Positions 11,777-63,054 of a stretch of DNA of 64,000 nt are shown piece after piece. The position numbers and the translations under genes are program-made. This DNA comes from Salpingoeca rosetta (taxonomy: Eukaryota; Protista; Choanoflagellata). A model generated the notes under the pieces. It did not search any database. It saw only the letters and a program-made list of their open reading frames with translations, and was not told where the DNA came from. The DNA is taken from positions 504,318 through 568,317 of the forward strand of contig JAWQFM010000015.1 of assembly GCA_033442325.1 (NCBI GenBank). The letters run 5' to 3'. How positions within the stretch are numbered: the first letter of the stretch is position 1; every line of letters begins with the position of its first letter.

Positions 11777-21731
<9,955 letters not shown>

Positions 21732-34461: not shown

Positions 34462-39638
<5,177 letters not shown>

Positions 39639-52717: not shown

Positions 52718-53645
52718 TGTGTCTGTGTGTGTCTGTCTGTGTGTGTGTGTGTGTCTGTGTGTCTGTGTGTCTGTGTGTGTCTGTCTGTGTCTGTATCTGT
52801 GTGTGTCTGTGTGTGTCTGTGTGTCGTGTCGTCACATTGTGCTGATGTCAGCAATAAATTCAACAAAGACAGACCACTTCCATGTGACACACAAAAAGCA
52901 GGCACGCAGGCCAGCAAAGCAGCAAGCACACCCACCAGACTCACCACACCCATCTCAGGTGACAAGCCTACACTCGTCGAGTCGTCGACAACGCTGCTGC
53001 GTTCTGTCCCGCCTTGAGCACTTTTGGAGGTGACTGGGATTTCCTTGAGCACAAGCGCTGGCGCAACGAGGGAACAACAAAAACAAGAACAAAGAGAACA
53101 AAGAGACTAGCACCGCACTGCGTGCACTGGCGCAGGCCTGCGCACTCATCAGTGAACAGCGCAGCCTCACCCCCTGCTGCTGCTGGTGACACACCAATAT
53201 TCCGCTCTGACTCACGACATTATTTGCATGCGGGACACCACCCAAAGGTCTGCATGCCTCTCTGACAGACGCAGACACAACAATCCACCATGGGAATTGT
53301 CGACAAGCAGACGCCACGCACACAAAACGTCCTGCACACAAGAGGACACAACGCAGCACCAACCTGAGTTGACACACAGTTTGGTGGCAGTGGATGAGTT
53401 GGCATCTGCACTTCTGTTCATTTTCCTTCCAGCACTCCAAGCAAGCACTCTGAGCACTGAGATTGCGATCGCTTGAGACTTCTGCCGACAGCAAAGCAAG
53501 CAAGGAACACACACAAAACACCCCAGCAAGGAACAAGGAAGAAGCACCTCACTGCTTCACCTGTCTACCTGTCTACCTGTACGCCGCCACGCAAAACGGC
53601 CTCAAGCCTTTCAACCAGAAGGACCCAACAGGACCTTGAGCGAGA

Positions 53646-56600
53646 ATGCCACCAAAACGCCCACCAACGGGGACGGGTCGCGGTGCGGACCAGCGCGATC
53701 CACCGCCGCCATACCAAGAGACCCAGCAGCAGGAACAATCGGATGCTGTGCCTACAGGCACACGCACGCCCGCGGCGAACGCGCCATCGTTTCACCCTTC
53801 CCGCCGCACGACCCGGGAGGCGCAGGAGGCTCACCGCGCAGATCATCAGCATCAGCAACAAGACCCCCCACAACAGGACCATCACGACGGCGAGGAGGAC
53901 GAGGACGTGGATCTGGAGGAGGAAGAAGCCTCGACCACTGACGTGCCCGACCAGGATGCCACAGGCGACGCAAGCAACAAGCGTTACATGCTTGAGCCGA
54001 TGGAGGACGTGAAGCGACGTGTTGAAATTGCCCCTGCCTCGACTCAGAAGTTTATGGAATACCTCAAGGTCAGTTCCAGCATGTGCGCATACGCTCTGTG
54101 TGGTGTGTTCTCTCTCTCTCTCTCATACGCACTCCTCTCTATCTGTCCTTCTGCTTGTATGTGTATGTGTGTGTATGTGTGTGTGTGTGTACGTACGTGC
54201 CTACATATACAACCCACTCCCCTGCTTCCATACAACCACCGAACACACACACTTAACACATACCAAACCACCTCGCTGCTGTGTTCAGGTGCTCCTCGTT
54301 CTGCTCGTGACGGCCGCCGGCGATCCCACGGACAAAGCCCAGCTGCTGGAGACCCTCAAGGATGCCAGGCAGCGTGCCGAGGAGGAGCGCTACCTCCCCT
54401 GCGATTTGGACGACTTTGACCGCATTGGCCGTGACATCGAGGATGGTCAGTTCAAGGAGGCCCTTGCCAAGACAACGCTGCTGCTGAAGGTCATCCGCCC
54501 ATTCGATATCCACATGACACAGTATCTCATCGACCAGAGTCGCGTGTATGCGGAGGCGATGAAGAACAAGAACGTCGTCGTCTTCCTTGGTCGATCGGGC
54601 GGCGGCAAATCCACCTCCCTGCTCTATCTCTCTGGCTGCACGATGATCCAGCGTACCAACGCCTATCGCGACATTGGCCCTGCCCCTGGCGCTGCTCCTG
54701 AGGGCTTCAAGGTCAATGGCAACCCTGAAAGCGAGACGGCTTTTGTGCGTGGTGTTCGCTTGTCAGCCGATTACCTTGAAGAACATGGTGTGATGCTCGC
54801 AGATGACGACACAGACGTCCTGATTGTGGACACGCCAGGTTAGTTGCAGCTTTGCTGTTTCGCACCCAATACACGCACACACACACACACATACTCCCGC
54901 ACACACACGCACATACACACGCACATACACACGCACACATACACACACTCTCTCTCACAAGCAAGCTTGATTCACACTTGTGTCCCCACCTCGCCCCACT
55001 AACTCACTAACTGCTCCCCCACCCCCACCCATTCCACAACTCAATACACAGGCATCGGCGATAACTGCGGTGCAGAGATCGACGTGGCCAACACCATCGG
55101 CATCCACCACGCCCTCAAGGCATGTAATGGCTTCTGGCCGGTCATCGTCGCTTCCAAGGATGGTGGCCCCAACGGGGAACTGACCAAGGCAAGCCTGCAA
55201 GTCGCCTCCAACCTCTTCAAGAGCATCAGAAGCGTCAACCAGCAGCTCTCGTTCCTCTTCACCAAGTACCAGAGCGTTGACGAGCATGACGCAATCGCTG
55301 AAATGTTCAAGGTGTTCCAGGAGCAAGCACGGGAGCGCCCTAGTGATGATCCGTATCGTGTCATCGTCCGCGTCATCGCCGCCAAGCTCAGGCAACTCAA
55401 GAGTCGGAGACAAGCCGGAGATGAGATTGTCCTCCCTCTCGAACCAGATCGCATCGCAATCCACCTCAGCGACATCTTCAACAAGCAACCCATTGCCCCG
55501 TTTAGCGTGGCCGACCACCCATCCCTCCTCTCCACCTCGGAGGCAGCCATCGCTGACCAGGCCCGCCTCAACATCGCCGCCATCCAGTTTGCCATGGAGC
55601 GTGGCGAGCACAAGCTCGCCGTTCAGCGCGTCAAGGAGCTGCAGGGCCTGCAAAAGGTGGTGTCGTCCGAGGAGGTGACGCGGGCCACAAAGAACGCCCA
55701 GCAGGCGATTGTGCAGCATCTCACGCGTGAGTTCAACGCTGTGGTGGAGCGCATCAACGAGTTCAAGGATGCTTCCACCGGCTTCATTGCCGTGGACGTG
55801 CTGGACACCCTCACCGCCATTGGCGACGCCACCCGCTTCTTCCAACGCGAGCTGCCGAACCTCGACCTCTCCGCCGTCTCTGCAGAAGTGACGGCCTCCG
55901 CCCTTGGCGATCTGGTCAACACGCTGCAGCGGGACGTGGGCCGCGCTGAGCTCTCTGCCCACGCGCGCGTCAACCAGGCCAACAAGCTGCGCACCCTCGT
56001 CGGCGCCATCAGCAGCATCCCTGCCGAGCGGTACGAGAGCGCCGTGCAGGGCCTGGCAGATGAAGTGCTTTCGATGCAGCGGCGTGCCGTGGAGGCGCTC
56101 GAACAGCGGCAGCTGCACGAGGCAGGCGAGCTGAGCACAGCCACACTGCAGGCTGCAGACGCCTTTGCCGCCCACCTCGACGCCACCCGCACGGGCCAGC
56201 TGACAGGCGCCAGCGTGGGCTCCGGTGGCGCCGGCAGCAGCGGCAGCACATCTTCTTCAACAACAACAACAACAACAACAACAACAACGACGACGACGAC
56301 GACGAGCACTGCCAGCAGCCAGAAGACCAGTGCCAGCAGCCTTCCTCAGCAGGTGGGCGAGTTCACCGGCCAAGTCGAAGTCGAAGCAGAGACCGCCCAG
56401 TCAGCGTCGCAGCGCATTGCTCCCTGGCGGGGGGCATTCATCAAGTCCCTGCGTGCTGCCGTGCATCGCCCTGTTGACCAAGCCCGCCACACGCTGACCG
56501 ACCTCACCCCAAACAACTTGGGCCTGAAAGGACAGACTGCTGTGGATGCGCTGGCAACAGCGCTGGCCCTCATCACCGATGTGCAGAAGACGCCCCAGCT

Positions 56601-59600
56601 TGCAGCCGTCATCGGCGCTCAGCAGCTGGAGTCACTGCTCGACCAGCTTGTGTTCGTGTGCGACGAGCATCTCACCCACATCATCGACGAGATTGCGGAA
56701 GTGTGCCAGCAGGACCTGACCGACGCCCTTCAGCAGGCAGAGCCGCTGGTGCTTCACCTCATTCGGTTCCGCGACCTCCCCTCCGTGGATTTGGCGCGCA
56801 AGTACACCCGTCATGAGGCCGCAGCGCGTACAGAGGTTGGCCGGGTCGTCGGCACCGCCCAACAGCTCGTGCGTGACATTGTCCACAATGCGTTTAACAA
56901 TCACGACGACAGTGGCATTCACTGCTCGCTGCCAGCCCTGCTGGCCTCGCTCAAGGCCGCAACGTATGCCAACGAACTGCAGGCTGGCATGATTGACAAG
57001 GCCACCGACAAACTCATCGGCAGTGTGCGAGATGAGGCGTACCAGTTTGAAGCAAAGGCCACGCGCTTCCCCATGCAGCTCGACAACCCCGACATTGTTC
57101 CCGAAGTGGCGGAGGCCATCACCCAGCTGTCCAGTCTGCGCGCACTCGGCAGCGTCCTCGAAGGCATTGATGGGAGCTACACAAAGGCCATCGACCACGT
57201 TACAGAAGGTGTCCAACGCATTGTGGATGCAGCCAAGGAGTTCTTTGCCAAGGTCCCAAAAGACATCGCATTTGACAACCCTGCAACGGGCGGTGACGAA
57301 GACGTCTCGAGCACTTCACCATCGACCACGCGCCTTGACTTCCAGCTCGACCTGAGACGTGTGAACCGCATCCACCACTTCCTCCACAAGGCGACCAAGG
57401 AGTCCCATCTCAGTCTCTACGTTGCCAGCATCAACGCCTTGAAGAACGTCTTGGAGGAATCCATGGCCAACTACGGAGCGTACATTCGCCGCTGCCTCTC
57501 TCATCTTTACCACAACGTGCTCGAAACGTTTGTGAACGATGCGGCTGAGGATGCAGTGGCTGCCACCAAACGCCTGAGGATGGCTTGCCTCACGCTCCAG
57601 ATTCGACTGGAGGAGTTGCAGCGCATGGAAGATCAGTTCCCAGAACTGCATGTGCTGGCGTTCCAGAACCCGCCACAAGAGCTCCGCACCTTGGGTCAGG
57701 ATGCAGCAACCCGAGATACGGAGTGCCGTCAATTTAAGCAGGACGGACGACTCAATGAACTGCATCGCCACGTGCTGGCTGCAGGCATCTTGCGACAGCT
57801 CGACGGCGTCCTCGGGGGCGCCATCACGTATGCCCAGCTCTACAAAGAATTTTCTGGGGAGGTTGCCGACTTCAGGGACAACGCTGTGCAACAACTCACG
57901 CAAGCCGTGGAGGCGCGCGATTTCCCCCGGGCAGCGACCTTGCTCAAGCAGCTTCACGACACAAGCACCCAAAAGCGGCCAACGTTGGACCAGTCCATCA
58001 TCACTGCAGTTGATGCAACCTACGCCAACTGCCTGAAGCGTGCTCACCAGATCACCTACGTTAACAGCGAGAGGTCGCGTCTGCGGCGGTTCGAGGAACT
58101 GCAGCAAGCCCTCAACATGGCAAAATCGACCAAGCAGCTGCAGGCGCCCGGCCTGAAGCTCGTTACCGCAGAGCAGGCAGAAGAGTGGGAGAAGAAGATC
58201 GCTGCCGTGAGGAACACAGTGAACACATTCCTAACAGATGAGTGCGACCGAGTGGAAAACGACATGAAGCGATGCTGCTTCGCCGAGGCCCAAACCCAAC
58301 TGCAGGAGCTTGCTTCCTGTCTCCAAGCTGTTGAGCACGAGCTTGAGGGCTTGGATGAAGCACACGCGCGCATCAGCGACCTCAAAGCAAGCATTCTCAG
58401 GGGCCCCGAGGAGGCTGTCGCTGCGTTTGAGGGCCTGACATTGGAGAAGGCCATCAGCAACCCGCCGCAGGTCTTGGCACACCTTGCCAAGGAGAGCGCT
58501 CAGGTGAAGGCAGCCGTGAACCAGCGTGTGATGAAGCTGCTGACAGACTTTAAGGCCCGCATGTCCAGCGACGATGTGATGAGTGTGAACCTGGAGGTTG
58601 TGATGCAGCACCTGGAGCACTTCAAGGAGCTGTGCCCTGATGACATGCAGAAGCAGGTGACTGCGACATCGGATGACATTCTGGCGACGCTTCGCCAGCG
58701 CATTGTATCACGGGCGAGCGAGCTCAAGGAGCGGCTTGACCACGACGACTGGGATGGCCTCAAAGCTGACGTTGGGCTGATGCGCAAGCAGCCTGTGGGC
58801 CAGCTTGCCAACACCATCAACGCGCAACTCACGTCCAAGGTTGACGGCATCGCCGAGGACGCCTTCCAAGCGCTCGAGGACCGCAGACAAGACCGGCAGC
58901 TCCTCAAGGTTGTGAAGCGCCTGGCCAAGTGCAACGAGATTGGCGTGCCGACTGCAGCGGCCAAGCTGAAGGCCATGGTGCAGCAAGCGACATCGAAGCT
59001 GGGCGTTGAGCACCAAACCATGGCGCACGTGTTTGCCTCGCCCCAACTGACGGAGCCAGGCATTGCCCGTGACGTGTCCCAGGACTTTGCAAGGAGCGTG
59101 GTGCGCGCCCTCTATTTGGAGAGCAGCATTCAGCTGGCAAGCAACTCCATCAAGAAAGACAGGACAACTGGCGGCGGAGGCAGACTGCAGCGTCGCGAGA
59201 CGGACGATGGTGCGTCTGTGCTCGAGGACCTCCGTGCATGGGCAGTGAAGTGCTCGAAAGATGTGGCCAAGTTGCAGCAGGACGTGGGCCATCTCAAGAC
59301 CGCGCTGGCAGAGCTGGAGCCCTCCAAAGTGGACTGGAACGCCTTTGCATCCGTCAACACGATGATGCTGTCGCACCAGTGCGGGCTGGTTGCATGCACT
59401 GGTTCGGAGCTTGCCCGCCCCGCAAAGGAGCTTCACATCGCACCAGCTGTTCTGGAGGAGTGCCAGAAGTGCAAGCAGTCGCTCGATGCAGTCGTGTCGG
59501 AGCTGGATGACGTGACATCAAAGTGGTTCGACGAGAGCATGGGCATCAACGTGCTGGATGACCAGTACAATGTCAACTCAGAGGAGATGCGCAAGGCATA

Positions 59601-62600
59601 CGCACGCCTCCACTGCACGAAGCAGCTCCTGGAGCTGACACTTCCCTTTGCGGCCTATTTTGCAGACGGGGTGGAGGCGGTGCGCTCACGCCCGGAGCAG
59701 CTGTCCGAGCACGTGCAGCTGCAAGAGGAGCACATTGCATCAGAGCTCGACGCAGCCCAGACGTCACGCAAGTACGATAGGATGGAGACCCTGATGCAAC
59801 ACCTGAGCATTGTCGGTGCCGTGCAGGATGCCAGGCCACCCCAGACTGTGGGCAGGTACTCGGGATCGGGTTCAGGCTCAGGCTCCCCTTCGCGGCGGCG
59901 CAGTGCACGACGCGGGCGCAGCAAGCGCACGGAGATCATTGCCAAGCTTCAGCGGTCACTCATGGCGGACGCCATGGGCAAGGTGAAACAGCTGCACGAT
60001 GCAGCCACCGACGACGAGATTGCAGGTGTGCTTGTTGAGCTGCAGCGGATGAGTGACAACGTGGACTGTGTTCGCGATGAGGTCGAACGCCGTGTGAGGG
60101 AATTCCTGGGCAGCTACAACAAGAAGAGCAACAAGCACATTCCCAGGCTTGGCCTTCGGCTGGACGGGCTACAGTCCCCAGAGGCACAGCGTGTGCTGCA
60201 GGCGTACGATGTGTTCACCGGGTATCTGCGTCGCCTCTTCAACGACAAGATCAGCTCTGTGGGCATCGACGACGCGCTGAAGACGCTGAAAGAGGATGAC
60301 ATCAACAAACTCACACTCGAACACTGTGACGAGCTGAAGCGCATGTTTGACGAATTCCTCAAGCAGTACCACAAGAACTTGAAGATGATCACCGATGGAC
60401 CAAAGGCAGTCGACGAACTTGCTGCAAGTGCGAGGGCTTGCGCTGCCGAGATCACAAAGAACCCAGACCTTCACGCTCAGGGCATGGAATGGACGGCTCC
60501 AATGAGGTCGCGGCTGCCGACACTCATGGCGCACATCTTTGGCATGTGGACGCTGCACCACGCGAGCAACCCCAACCAGGCACGTGAGGAGCTCCTGCAG
60601 CCGCACGCCTCCCAAGCCCTGGCCATCTTCCGCCTGCTTGGCGCTGGCACTGAGAAGGGCGAGCTGCACTCAAACCTGGTGCAGGTCCTGACGGGACAAG
60701 GCAAAGCCGTCATCTTGGCTGTCACGGCATCTGTGCTTGCGCTGTACGGCATGCACGCCAGCGTTGCCTGCTACTCCGAGTACCTGACCACGCGCGATTA
60801 TGGCGATTTTGTGTTCTTGTTTGACAAGCTGGGCGTGGCTGAGCATGTGGAATACGGCACGTTCAACGCCCTGTGCGAGTCGCACATCAACAAGGAGGGC
60901 GACATCCGCGAGCGCGTGCAGCACTTGATCCAAGAAGACAAGTTCCAGAAGCCTGGGTGGATCAAGCGCGCCAAGGACAAGGCTGCTGCCTTGAAGGACA
61001 AAGCAGCAAGCTTCCTGCCTGGAAGTGCCAGTTCCTCCAAGGTTCCGCGCCCTCGCGTGCTGTTGATTGACGAAGTTGATGTTGCGCTCGACCCAAGCAT
61101 CATGAGCAACACGTACGCGCCCAACTGCAAGGTGACCAACGAGGCTGTCAAGAACTTGGTGATGCACCTGTGGGACAATCGCACAACTGGACTCACCTTC
61201 GCCAAGGTGGCCACCTCGACGCAGTATGAAAGCCTCCAGCAGCAGTTTGCCAAGCCGTACCACGACCTCCTCCGAAGCTGCGTGAACGCCATGATTGTTG
61301 ACCTGCAATCGTATGAGAACCACGGGTACGTGTTTGAGGGCGGCCGCATCGGTTACAAGCTGCACGACACCGTCAACTACAAGATGCGCATGCGCTACAA
61401 GACCTTGTTCGCGCTCATGCACGAGCTTGAGAAGACCGGCGTTGACGTACACACTTCCCAGGACGTGGCCAAGGAGGTTGCCTTCCTCATCAACTGCGGC
61501 GCGTTCTCGTACTTTGAGGTGCAGCGCACGTTTGCCTGCACGCTCGGTGTGACGGGCACGCTCAAGGACCTGTCTGCTCCCGAATTTGGGGTGCTGAAGG
61601 AAGACTACGGCATTCACACGTACACGGTGATGCCGTCCATGTTTGGCGCGTCGCAGCTGAAGCCGTTTGAGGCAAACGACCTGAAGATTGTGCCCGCTGA
61701 CCAGTACCATCTGACCATCACCCAGGAGATTCGCAAGCGCCATGGACAGGGCCGCCCCGTGCTTGTGTTGTTTGAGACTGCACGTGAGCTTCAACAGTAC
61801 TACAAGCACGAGTCCCTCGCTGGCCTCATGCAGCACGTGCAGATTCTGAGCGAGACACTGGATGCTTCCGAAAAGGAGAAGATTGTGCGCAATGCGACGC
61901 AGCAGAAGCGCATCACCCTTTGCACCCGCTCGTTTGGGCGCGGCGTGGACTTCCAGGTGCGTGACCCGGCCATCCCAGACAAGGGCGGTGTGCACGTGCT
62001 GCAAACGTTCCTGGCAGAGACGATGGCTGAGGAGCGGCAGTGCATGGGCCGCACGGCTCGGCAGGGTGAGCCGGGCAGCTACTCGATGGTGCTGCGCCGT
62101 GAGCAGCTGGAGAAGTTTGATGTGGACTTTGAAGCGCTCGACAAGCAGGAGAGCAGTCACGAGCTGCGCAAGTATCTTCACGAGAGGCGCGATGATGCGT
62201 TTGGGAAGCAGTTCAAGCAGTCGTACGAGATTGCGCGGGCTGTGAAGAAGGAGCACGAGGAATCGATGGCATTCCTTGAGGAACTGAGTGGCGAGCGCAA
62301 GGCTGAAGTGGTGAAGGCGCTTGAGAAATGGAACTACACGCGCGAGGTGGCGTCCAAGGTCACGCGCACATTCTACGCGCTCGATTGCACTTGCTCCATG
62401 AGCACCAGCTTGAAGAAGACCACGCAAGTCATTGGCACCGTCTTTGAGCGCACCGAGAAGATTCTTGACGACGCCGGCTTGCTTGGCAACAGCGATGTCG
62501 CCATGCAGCTGGCGGCATACCGCAACTACAACGTGGATGCGGACCAGCTGCAGCAGGTGTCGGGCTGGGAGCAGAACCCGCTTGCACTGCGGCAGTTCCT

Positions 62601-63054
62601 GTTTGGCCTGAAGGTGAATGGTGGCTGGGGCAACGAAGCCATTGAGGTTGCGCTTCACCGCGCCAACACGGAGAAGGACGTGTCGCAGGTGATTTTGATT
62701 GGCGACGCACCAGCCAACTCCCCAGATGAGGTGGCATCCAAGCGAAACAGCAAAGGTGAGCGTTACTGGTCCAAGTTTCCCGAGTTTGCCAAATCCACGA
62801 CCGCTGAGACCGAGCTGCAGAAGCTGAAAGAGAAAGGCATCCCGGTTCATGCCTTCTACATTCAACCGCGCGCAAAGGACTTCTTTGAGCACGCCGCTCA
62901 GGTGACTGGTGGGCGCTGCGAGTTCCTGGACATTGATGATGCGTCTGGGGCTGATCAGCTCACGAACCTTGTCTCCGAAGAGCTGCTGCGGCGCGCGGGC
63001 GGCGAACAAGGCAACCAACTCGTTGACACCTACCGAGCCACTTTCTGCAAGTGA
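53646..63054 (+). CDS. ~2,991-aa protein: P-loop GTPase + long helical region + SecA-like SF2 ATPase + vWA (exons 53646-54068, 54289-54838, 55052-63054)
   Basis: Exon lengths 423+550+8003 = 8976 nt, in frame. G1 GRSGGGKS (54589-54612), G3 DTPG|IGD, G4-like FTK; SecA-like motifs QVLTGQGK (60691), YLTTRD, LIDEVD (61069), GVTGT, GRPVLV, TRSFGRGVDF, GGVHV, GRTARQGEPG (62047); vWA MIDAS-like DCTCS (62383), GGWGNE, ILIGDAP. Confidence 0.9.

Follow-up and report, generated by a model that had tools for sequence, protein, structure and literature searches.

SecA is the textbook bacterial secretion motor, and SecA-like domains without the scaffold and wing recur in giant proteins of Omnitrophota and Actinobacteria, for which self-secretion has been suggested (bioRxiv 10.1101/2023.11.21.568195). 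Giant actinobacterial toxins also carry embedded SecA-like domains, with an aid to secretion suggested as their role (PMC8195603), and secondary SecA_DEAD proteins are encoded beside type I secretion genes in Planctomycetes, Verrucomicrobia and Proteobacteria (PMC4452313). The present analysis concerns a gene of the choanoflagellate Salpingoeca rosetta in which a SecA-type motor is joined to an N-terminal G domain and to a C-terminal domain resembling von Willebrand factor A (vWA) domains. The gene lies on the + strand of a 64,000-nt stretch of contig JAWQFM010000015.1 (assembly GCA_033442325.1, positions 504,318 to 568,317 of the forward strand), referred to here as the window, and positions are given in window coordinates (Table 1). 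It encodes one chain of 2,991 aa, and the motifs stand at the places and in the order (GTPase, SecA-like ATPase, vWA) that a first-pass annotation of the DNA had given for a single chain of ~2,990 aa; that observation is confirmed, and the interpretation attached to it is partly supported. Full-text literature searches yielded no paper on the family and no characterised protein with this architecture, as the annotation had stated, and offered the embedded-SecA and secondary-SecA themes only. The parts are known, and their combination and cross-kingdom range appear to be undescribed.

The other two modules also have described counterparts. GTPases of the AIG1/GIMAP/Toc group undergo nucleotide-dependent dimerisation or oligomerisation and are often linked to immunity, those of the GIMAP type in plants and vertebrates. 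The metal ion-dependent adhesion sites (MIDAS) of vWA domains grip an acidic residue of a protein ligand. Midasin (Rea1), which is universal and essential in eukaryotes, is a giant soluble protein with a motor, a long helical region and a C-terminal MIDAS vWA domain that grips the ligand to be pulled off. The likeness of the S. rosetta protein to midasin is a functional analogy alone and not homology: the order of motor, long linker and C-terminal MIDAS is shared, whereas the midasin motor is a six-module AAA+ ring in place of the superfamily 2 (SF2)/SecA motor found here, and midasin has no G domain. The giant Omnitrophota and Actinobacteria proteins and the toxins share with the S. rosetta protein an embedded SecA_DEAD-type motor without scaffold or wing that is distinct from the cell's own SecA, a resemblance at the level of domain type. 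These giant proteins differ in having many membrane-spanning segments, enzyme and adhesin domains and lengths of 30,000-85,000 aa, with no GIMAP-like G domain and no terminal vWA domain. The secondary SecA_DEAD proteins are likewise extra, divergent and not the housekeeping SecA, but they are of ordinary size and are defined by their type I secretion neighbourhood (PMC4452313); the bacterial loci examined here (those of the relatives P0013, P0002 and P0080/P0019) showed none of these neighbours.

The locus is a real, expressed and spliced gene for a soluble protein with two nucleoside triphosphatase (NTPase) modules. Its 2,991-codon open frame comprises three exons, the last at 55052-63054, separated by GT..AG introns, and raw reads from stranded RNA sequencing (RNA-seq) show both introns spliced exactly as modelled. 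A transcript contig from a study separate from that of the raw reads spans exons 1-2-3 (53431 to 56222), and a second contig of 6,954 nt begins at 56316 and is long enough to extend beyond the stop codon. The sole break between transcript contigs (56223-56315) is a poly-Thr repeat, and raw-read depth is unbroken there and from the G domain onward. Intron 2 falls within the switch II motif of the G domain, between DTPG and IGD, and the remainder of that domain shares the 8-kb exon 3 with the SecA-like part. Spliced reads, transcript contigs and the single frame agree that the GTPase and SecA exons are not separate transcripts. Bacterial contamination, or separate genes misread as one, has a negligible probability and was rejected because spliced reads cross both introns. 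Close full-length bacterial relatives and the intron-free 8-kb frame of exon 3 would suit such an artefact, but RNA-seq confirms two spliceosomal introns, of which one interrupts the G domain, and the gene has a guanine-cytosine content like that of the rest of the window and a continuous frame and read depth; three paralogues lie on two large contigs, and the nearest relative is a choanoflagellate-style transcript with 55% identity.

Some further features of the transcript and its introns were recorded. A run of 15 Thr (residues 728-742; 56260-56304, exon 3) interrupts short-read transcript assemblies, and TG/CA microsatellites are abundant in both introns (54092-54207; 54865-54966). In two RNA-seq samples of one study with similar depth (X17, X18), reads over 53300-59250 numbered 92 vs 1,038, an ~11-fold difference.

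Sequence and predicted structure confirm that the ATPase is SecA-like and closer to SecA than to DEAD-box enzymes, as the first-pass annotation had proposed. Pfam models SecA_DEAD, P-loop_SecA and Helicase_C match the protein above their cut-offs (PF07517, 29.1 bits against 24.6; PF21090, 35.9 bits against 27), and within the family PF07517 matches 42 of 42 members and PF21090 41 of 42. Matches in a phmmer search of the PDB were nearly all SecA or SecA2 (best E 4e-12), and among NCBIfam models those for SecA and SecA2 alone were matched, at scores far under their full-length cut-offs (TIGR00963, 19.7 bits vs 800; SecA2 models, 57-60 bits vs 930-1,085). The last 862 residues were modelled with AlphaFold2 using 42 homologues (predicted local distance difference test, pLDDT, 86; predicted template modelling score 0.81). 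In the PDB, SecA structures took all of the first 36 Foldseek ranks for this model (E 8e-18 to 2.5e-9), ahead of DinG, UvrB and DEAD-box proteins (E ~1e-8 to 1e-6), and VIA-align gave SecA a Z of 31 over 524 aligned residues, compared with ~23 over ~320 residues for DEAD-box enzymes. The motor motifs (TGQGK at residue 2205, DEVD at 2331, TGT at 2492, GRGVD at 2620 and GRTARQG at 2657) belong to a set that does not vary across 42 sequences: Walker A, DExD, motif III, motif V and the arginine-finger motif.

The module consists of a first nucleotide-binding domain (NBD1; Walker A K2209, DEVD 2331-2334), an insertion of ~115 aa, a second nucleotide-binding domain (NBD2) and a helix of ~45 residues. 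In VIA-align the ~200 additional residues that align with SecA only are the NBD1 insertion and the long helix after NBD2. The insertion (model residues 226-340) is predicted to occupy the topological site of the preprotein cross-linking domain (PPXD) of SecA, and the SecA2 profile TIGR03714 aligns across it; the PPXD family itself (PF01043) matches none of the 42 members. The same is true of PF07516, which covers the helical scaffold, wing and two-helix finger. Between NBD2 and the vWA-like domain the model has just two helices, a long one (model residues 564-608) and a short one; it contains no two-helix finger and no SecA-type zinc- and SecB-binding tail, the C-terminus being the vWA-like domain. 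Thus, the full ordered set of nucleotide-binding motifs described in the first-pass annotation stands, and a SecA translocase does not: without wing, finger or tail, the module is a SecA-type motor. It shares with SecA and SecA2 the two-lobed DEAD-like motor, the SecA-type motifs and, in the predicted structure, an insertion at the PPXD site and a long helix after NBD2, and it differs from them in ending a soluble protein of ~3,000 aa in which the PPXD and wing/scaffold families go undetected.

Sequence searches of the PDB, Pfam and NCBIfam that give essentially SecA only, together with a SecA alignment ~200 residues longer than that of any helicase, with the NBD1 insertion and the long helix included, make it unlikely that the protein is a nucleic-acid machine, that is, a translocase or helicase of SF2 that works on RNA or DNA, with the vWA-like domain binding partners or regulating it, in RNA surveillance, genome defence or repair. 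Such a machine would be in keeping with the place of DinG, UvrB, XPD and DEAD-box proteins next after SecA (Foldseek E 1e-8 to 1e-7, Z ~23), with the PPXD and wing Pfam families being undetected in all 42 members and with the regulation of XPD by the vWA domain of p44, but Pfam detects no nucleic-acid-binding domain anywhere in the protein.

The G domain was folded as the equivalent region of P0001, the nearest relative (45% identical to the window protein in this region), with 49 homologues (pLDDT 85), and on this relative the predicted structure confirms an AIG1/GIMAP/Toc-like G domain, the type that the first-pass annotation had named. The P0001 model has a TRAFAC G-domain fold. Its top Foldseek neighbours were Toc34/33 and GIMAP7/2/1/5 (best E 5.7e-5), which make up most of ranks 1-20, and dynamin-family proteins (MxA, OPA1, SynDLP) and immunity-related GTPases (IRGs) were weaker neighbours in Foldseek and VIA-align. 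Exhaustive VIA-align comparison placed GIMAP7 (Z 12.8) and GIMAP4 (12.7) highest, with Era and EngB less than 1 Z unit away, and nine of the ten rows of an ESM Atlas shape search were clusters of AIG1/GIMAP/septin type.

Searches with the sequence of the domain were less specific. Pfam, scanned with the exon pieces as separate halves, gave no AIG1 (PF04548) match at E<=1; precomputed matches of relatives are to MMR_HSR1, RsgA or GBP; and a G-domain profile against the PDB returned P-loop-level matches only, midasin included, the weak matches to SRP54/FlhF and septin-9 being longer. The motifs lie at residues 242 (GRSGGGKS), 322 (DTPGIGD) and ~393 (FTKYQ). Throughout the family the G1 motif GxxGxGK[ST]T, the switch I Thr (T150) and DxPG are invariant, with K248 as the P-loop Lys of the window protein, as is an E..D..AN box after switch II. 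The G4 consensus is FTK[YF]P, with Asp at the fourth position in four of the 49 members, and the window protein has TKYQ. In summary, the domain agrees with the AIG1/GIMAP and Toc34-Toc159 paraseptins in its TRAFAC fold, its DTPGxxDT-type switch II and the T-K of G4, and departs from them in its modest scores, the mostly missing G4 Asp, the extra E..D..AN box and its attachment to a C-terminal machine of 2,500 aa.

Conservation within the family is highest in the last 256 residues (41-62% identity), and the domain closes with a conserved YRxxF tail. Five residues do not vary among 42-46 sequences, namely D2769, T2771, S2773, E2853 (part of a GGxGNE loop) and D2876 (part of IGDAP); in the window protein the corresponding motifs are DCTCS (2769), GGWGNE (2848) and IGDAP (2874). 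Judged from sequence, this putative site would be a DxTxS…E…D variant of the MIDAS motif DxSxS…T…D. Pfam leaves the window copy unmatched at E<=0.5, and 20 of 46 relatives weakly match vWA families (Med25_VWA, VWA_4, VWA, VWA_2 and VWA_3; best E 4e-5). The language-model neighbours of the C-terminus are all vWA clusters (scores 0.90-0.93), and a vWA profile found nothing in the PDB. Residues 631-861 of the 862-residue model show alternating strands and helices at pLDDT 80-97, and the structure-search matches of that model are taken up by the motor. Together these results support a divergent vWA domain with a putative MIDAS-like metal site.

The middle of the protein, here called the rod (~1,600 aa, residues 521-2129), evolves fast and is barely alignable by BLAST. 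No Pfam family, internal repeat, membrane-spanning segment or hydrophobic segment was found in it, and an ESM Atlas search with it gave no usable match; an SGSGSGSG tract lies at residue 1928. Profile comparison with hhalign nevertheless aligned a choanoflagellate rod with a bacterial rod over 1,407 columns (probability 99.6%, E 1e-24), which indicates that eukaryotic and bacterial members share a homologous rod. Furthermore, the spacing from the P-loop of the G domain to the Walker A motif of the motor is nearly constant across the family (~1,790-2,040 residues), and this spacing and the rod alignment together make the ~2,800-aa core one conserved architecture. Residues 1-141 are rich in P, Q, E and D and, from this composition, are probably disordered. 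Near the N-terminus is a PPxY motif (PPPY, residues 20-23, 53703-53714), the kind of motif that is bound by WW domains of NEDD4-type ubiquitin ligases; it is also found in the paralogue C15b and in P0001 (residues 18-21), and none occurs in the first 1.5 kb of the paralogue C31. The motif is conserved inside an otherwise poorly conserved region. Neither a signal peptide-like hydrophobic stretch nor any other hydrophobic segment occurs in the sequence, no amphipathic anchor is apparent, and the membrane-remodelling role offered in the first-pass annotation finds no footing there.

The family search shows that the protein is neither a one-off nor specifically eukaryotic. Among 5.8 billion proteins, the C-terminal 862 residues retrieved 308 clusters at 90% identity, the best 120 of which are 1,500-3,700 aa long and match with 99-100% query coverage and 35-55% identity. 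At E<=1e-30 an exhaustive profile search gave 1,550 representatives of clusters at 50% identity. This count is an upper bound, as ordinary SecA proteins and fragments may be among them; the best 150 all have E<1e-219. Named members are from the bdelloid rotifers Adineta, Rotaria and Didymodactylos (dozens), Reticulomyxa, Hexamita inflata and a gammaproteobacterial metagenome-assembled genome (MAG), and many matches are metagenome proteins. The best 120 include 33 rotifer and nine Hexamita proteins; among the named matches bdelloid rotifers are the sole animals and there are no fungi. Automatic database names are "SecA family profile domain-containing protein", "predicted GTPase" and "Helicase-related protein". 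In a FastTree phylogeny the three S. rosetta paralogues and P0001 group with a support of 100, Hexamita, Reticulomyxa and two rotifer expansions form separate clades, and bacterial sequences are interspersed; the tree is unrooted with long branches, and therefore no direction of transfer is drawn. A pattern-limited search of viral contigs gave one weak match, to the vWA part only, and thus nothing to suggest an origin in giant viruses.

Bacteria hold genuine members of the family, full-length and without introns. P0013 (3,046 aa, beginning with a U-box) lies on a 216-kb MAG contig among genes for ribosomal proteins, poly(A) polymerase and dUTPase. P0002 (3,376 aa) comes from a compact contig of 126 kb, where it has TPR genes around it and large TPR_12/TPR_10 genes on its flanks, and a further compact contig carries P0080 and P0019 in tandem. 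When one genome was scanned for each bacterial species, MAGs of uncultured Gammaproteobacteria and Pseudomonadota yielded full-length copies, and two Wolbachia strains and a Legionella MAG yielded relatives limited to the SecA-like module. The Wolbachia of Tribolium confusum (L014 7382-11911) has a 1,509-aa frame whose C-terminal SecA-like module is 28% identical to that of the window protein, without a vWA domain and with first 800 residues that match nothing; the second strain is that of Pentalonia nigronervosa (L013). Among relatives with long N-termini, Pfam identified a U-box in three, a RickCE-type CE-clan protease in two and a Ulp1 protease in one; the U-box carriers are bacterial or probably so, an assignment that covers the U-box members alone. 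For eight relatives with long N-termini, Pfam scans at relaxed thresholds brought no further secure match; to the eye, the N-terminus of P0002 may be OTU-like. Downstream of P0013 is a gene for a 192-aa TPR protein (L007 19122-19700; TPR_1/TPR_11, E 6e-30), and P0019 is adjoined on its contig by a 205-aa gene (19175-19792) with no Pfam family on record. At both loci the small gene starts where the giant gene ends, or shortly before that point, and may encode a partner or chaperone.

These bacterial relatives bear on the idea that the motor helps to export or deliver the giant protein that carries it, with the eukaryotic copies being transferred effector genes put to a new use. Precedent exists in the embedded SecA-like domains without scaffold or wing for which a secretion role has been suggested in giant bacterial proteins and toxins (bioRxiv 10.1101/2023.11.21.568195; PMC8195603), and some of the bacterial family members carry effector-like U-box heads. 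However, the published giant bacterial proteins are membrane-anchored and 10-30 times longer, whereas the S. rosetta protein lacks both a membrane-spanning segment and any hydrophobic stretch like that of a signal peptide, and its eukaryotic paralogues are under purifying selection over their whole length. The motor motifs are all invariant in eukaryotes, and to our knowledge the opisthokont cytosol has no SecYEG as a partner. Self-export is accordingly considered a distinctly improbable function.

The S. rosetta genome (55.4 Mb, 68 contigs searched) has three full-length paralogues, all intact and built on one exon plan: the window copy, C15b (C15:~1281167-1290004) and C31 (C31:~422833-431540). 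With dN/dS, the ratio of nonsynonymous to synonymous substitution rates, at ~0.35, they are under purifying selection along their whole length. Their divergence, compared over window positions 55054-63051, is mosaic, with dS ranging from 0.05 to >1.3 by segment and the closest pair changing along the gene. Over residues 626-773 every pair shares 95-99% identity (dS 0.05-0.17); over residues 1668-1807 the window copy is 96% identical to C31, with C15b at ~45%, and over residues 2694-2843 the pattern is reversed. Such a mosaic suggests repeated gene conversion or recombination.

Several partial relatives were found in the same genome. A fragment at C31:328491-329285, probably a pseudogene remnant, holds the last ~270 residues of the family, 93% identical to the window copy, with one in-frame TAA. 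Related G domains with the same post-DTPG intron occur at C16:455363-463622 and C5:990818-993432 (49% and 35% identical in exon 2), and one of the two runs into a 2,631-aa frame that aligns only with the initial portion of the rod and lacks both a SecA-like and a vWA part; the G domain and rod thus occur with other C-termini too. SecA_DEAD frames at C6:619395-624509 (1,705 aa) and C16:871693-876468 (1,592 aa), with motors ~29% identical to that of the window protein, no vWA domain and the ends DNFPY and DDFPY, show that the genome has at least two SecA-like families.

A housekeeping function as a scaffold or organelle-dynamics GTPase, doing routine membrane or cytoskeletal work in the manner of dynamins, atlastins or GIMAPs, is an improbable account of these genes. 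The protein is transcribed in ordinary culture, selection on it is purifying, and MxA, OPA1, SynDLP and IRGs are among the weaker structural neighbours of its G domain, all of which would suit such a role; but the distribution is very patchy, as the restriction of named animal matches to bdelloid rotifers and the lack of fungi among the named matches illustrate, and housekeeping genes do not usually show lineage-specific expansions and mosaic gene conversion. In addition, there is no membrane-binding segment, and the ubiquitin-system heads on bacterial members make sense only in a eukaryotic host.

The reading preferred here, at a probability of roughly 45%, is that the protein is a GTPase-gated, ATP-driven protein-remodelling machine that would work without a Sec channel in host-microbe conflict. 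The G domain would gate assembly or activation through nucleotide-dependent self-association, which is probable because GIMAP, Toc and septin GTPases self-associate in this manner. The vWA site would then capture an acidic residue of a protein ligand, and the SecA-type motor would use ATP to pull or remodel the captured polypeptide. In bacteria the proteins may act as secreted effectors, and in eukaryotes as a cytosolic factor for surveillance or remodelling that might have a link to ubiquitin. A role in conflict is compatible with the expansions (in rotifers, in Hexamita and with three copies here), the patchy distribution among eukaryotes that eat or harbour bacteria, the U-box and protease heads on relatives, the PPxY motif and the fast-evolving rod; the partial relatives in Wolbachia and Legionella and the 11-fold read difference between samples are further hints. 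The defence and substrate-threading function that the first-pass annotation attached to the protein is, likewise, something that we infer by analogy.

A number of observations weigh against the remodelling machine. In 45 of 49 members G4 lacks the Asp that specifies guanine, which leaves GTP use unproven. A predicted complex of two G domains with GTP scored 0.00, which speaks neither for nor against dimerisation. Most SF2 motors act on nucleic acids, and with the PPXD and wing/scaffold families at 0 of 42 and no finger, the handling of polypeptides is extrapolated from the motor lobes. Sliding dN/dS across the three paralogues at a resolution of 150 codons found no window >0.6, and so no direct sign of an arms race. 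PADLOC gave no match for the window protein, and for two bacterial relatives P-loop-level matches only (E ~1e-3). No experiment or characterised relative backs any function.

Table 1. Parts of the S. rosetta gene in window coordinates
Feature	Position	Strand	Basis or remark
5' untranslated region, minimum extent	53431..53645	+	transcript contig start at 53431; RNA-seq depth from bin 53300-53498 onward
Exon 1, residues 1-141	53646..54068	+	ATG and open frame
Intron 1, 220 nt, GT..AG, TG/CA microsatellite-rich	54069..54288	+	joint 54068/54289: 14 RNA-seq reads and one transcript contig
Exon 2, residues 142-324 and base 1 of codon 325	54289..54838	+	helical bundle, first half of G domain
Intron 2, 213 nt, GT..AG	54839..55051	+	joint 54838/55052: 4 RNA-seq reads and one transcript contig
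Exon 3 start, second half of G domain and C-terminal helices, to residue ~520	55052..55638	+	
Rod, residues 521-2129	55639..60465	+	no known family matched
SecA-like ATPase module, residues 2130-2735	60466..62283	+	Pfam, PDB sequence search, predicted structure
C-terminal vWA-like domain, residues 2736-2991	62284..63051	+	conservation, MIDAS-like residues, weak Pfam matches, language-model neighbours
Stop codon TGA	63052..63054	+	

Elsewhere in the window, a 462-aa open frame on the - strand (37174-38562) has a glycosyl hydrolase family 2 match (E 2e-6), and the other large open frames of the window have no Pfam match besides this glycosyl-hydrolase fragment.

A SecA-type motor kept under purifying selection in a cytosol without a channel, in a close relative of animals, points to a second, unknown use of this engine. 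Hundreds of diverged members hold to a constant architecture of ~2,800 aa that links a GIMAP-type GTPase with the motor and a vWA domain. A more far-reaching version, speculative and on balance doubtful, is that they form an undescribed cross-kingdom family of dual-NTPase machines, in which a channel-free SecA motor, gated by the GIMAP-like domain and aimed by the vWA domain, would extract or unfold targets, perhaps ubiquitin-marked ones, and which would have moved between intracellular bacteria, as an effector with U-box or deubiquitinase heads, and protist and rotifer hosts, as part of innate immunity. Present both in eukaryotes that eat or are exposed to bacteria and in host-associated bacteria, the family is a candidate for a new class of bacterial effectors or for a new eukaryotic innate-immune machine, with gene exchange between the two sides, and as this choanoflagellate is genetically tractable, with CRISPR established, these possibilities are open to direct testing.

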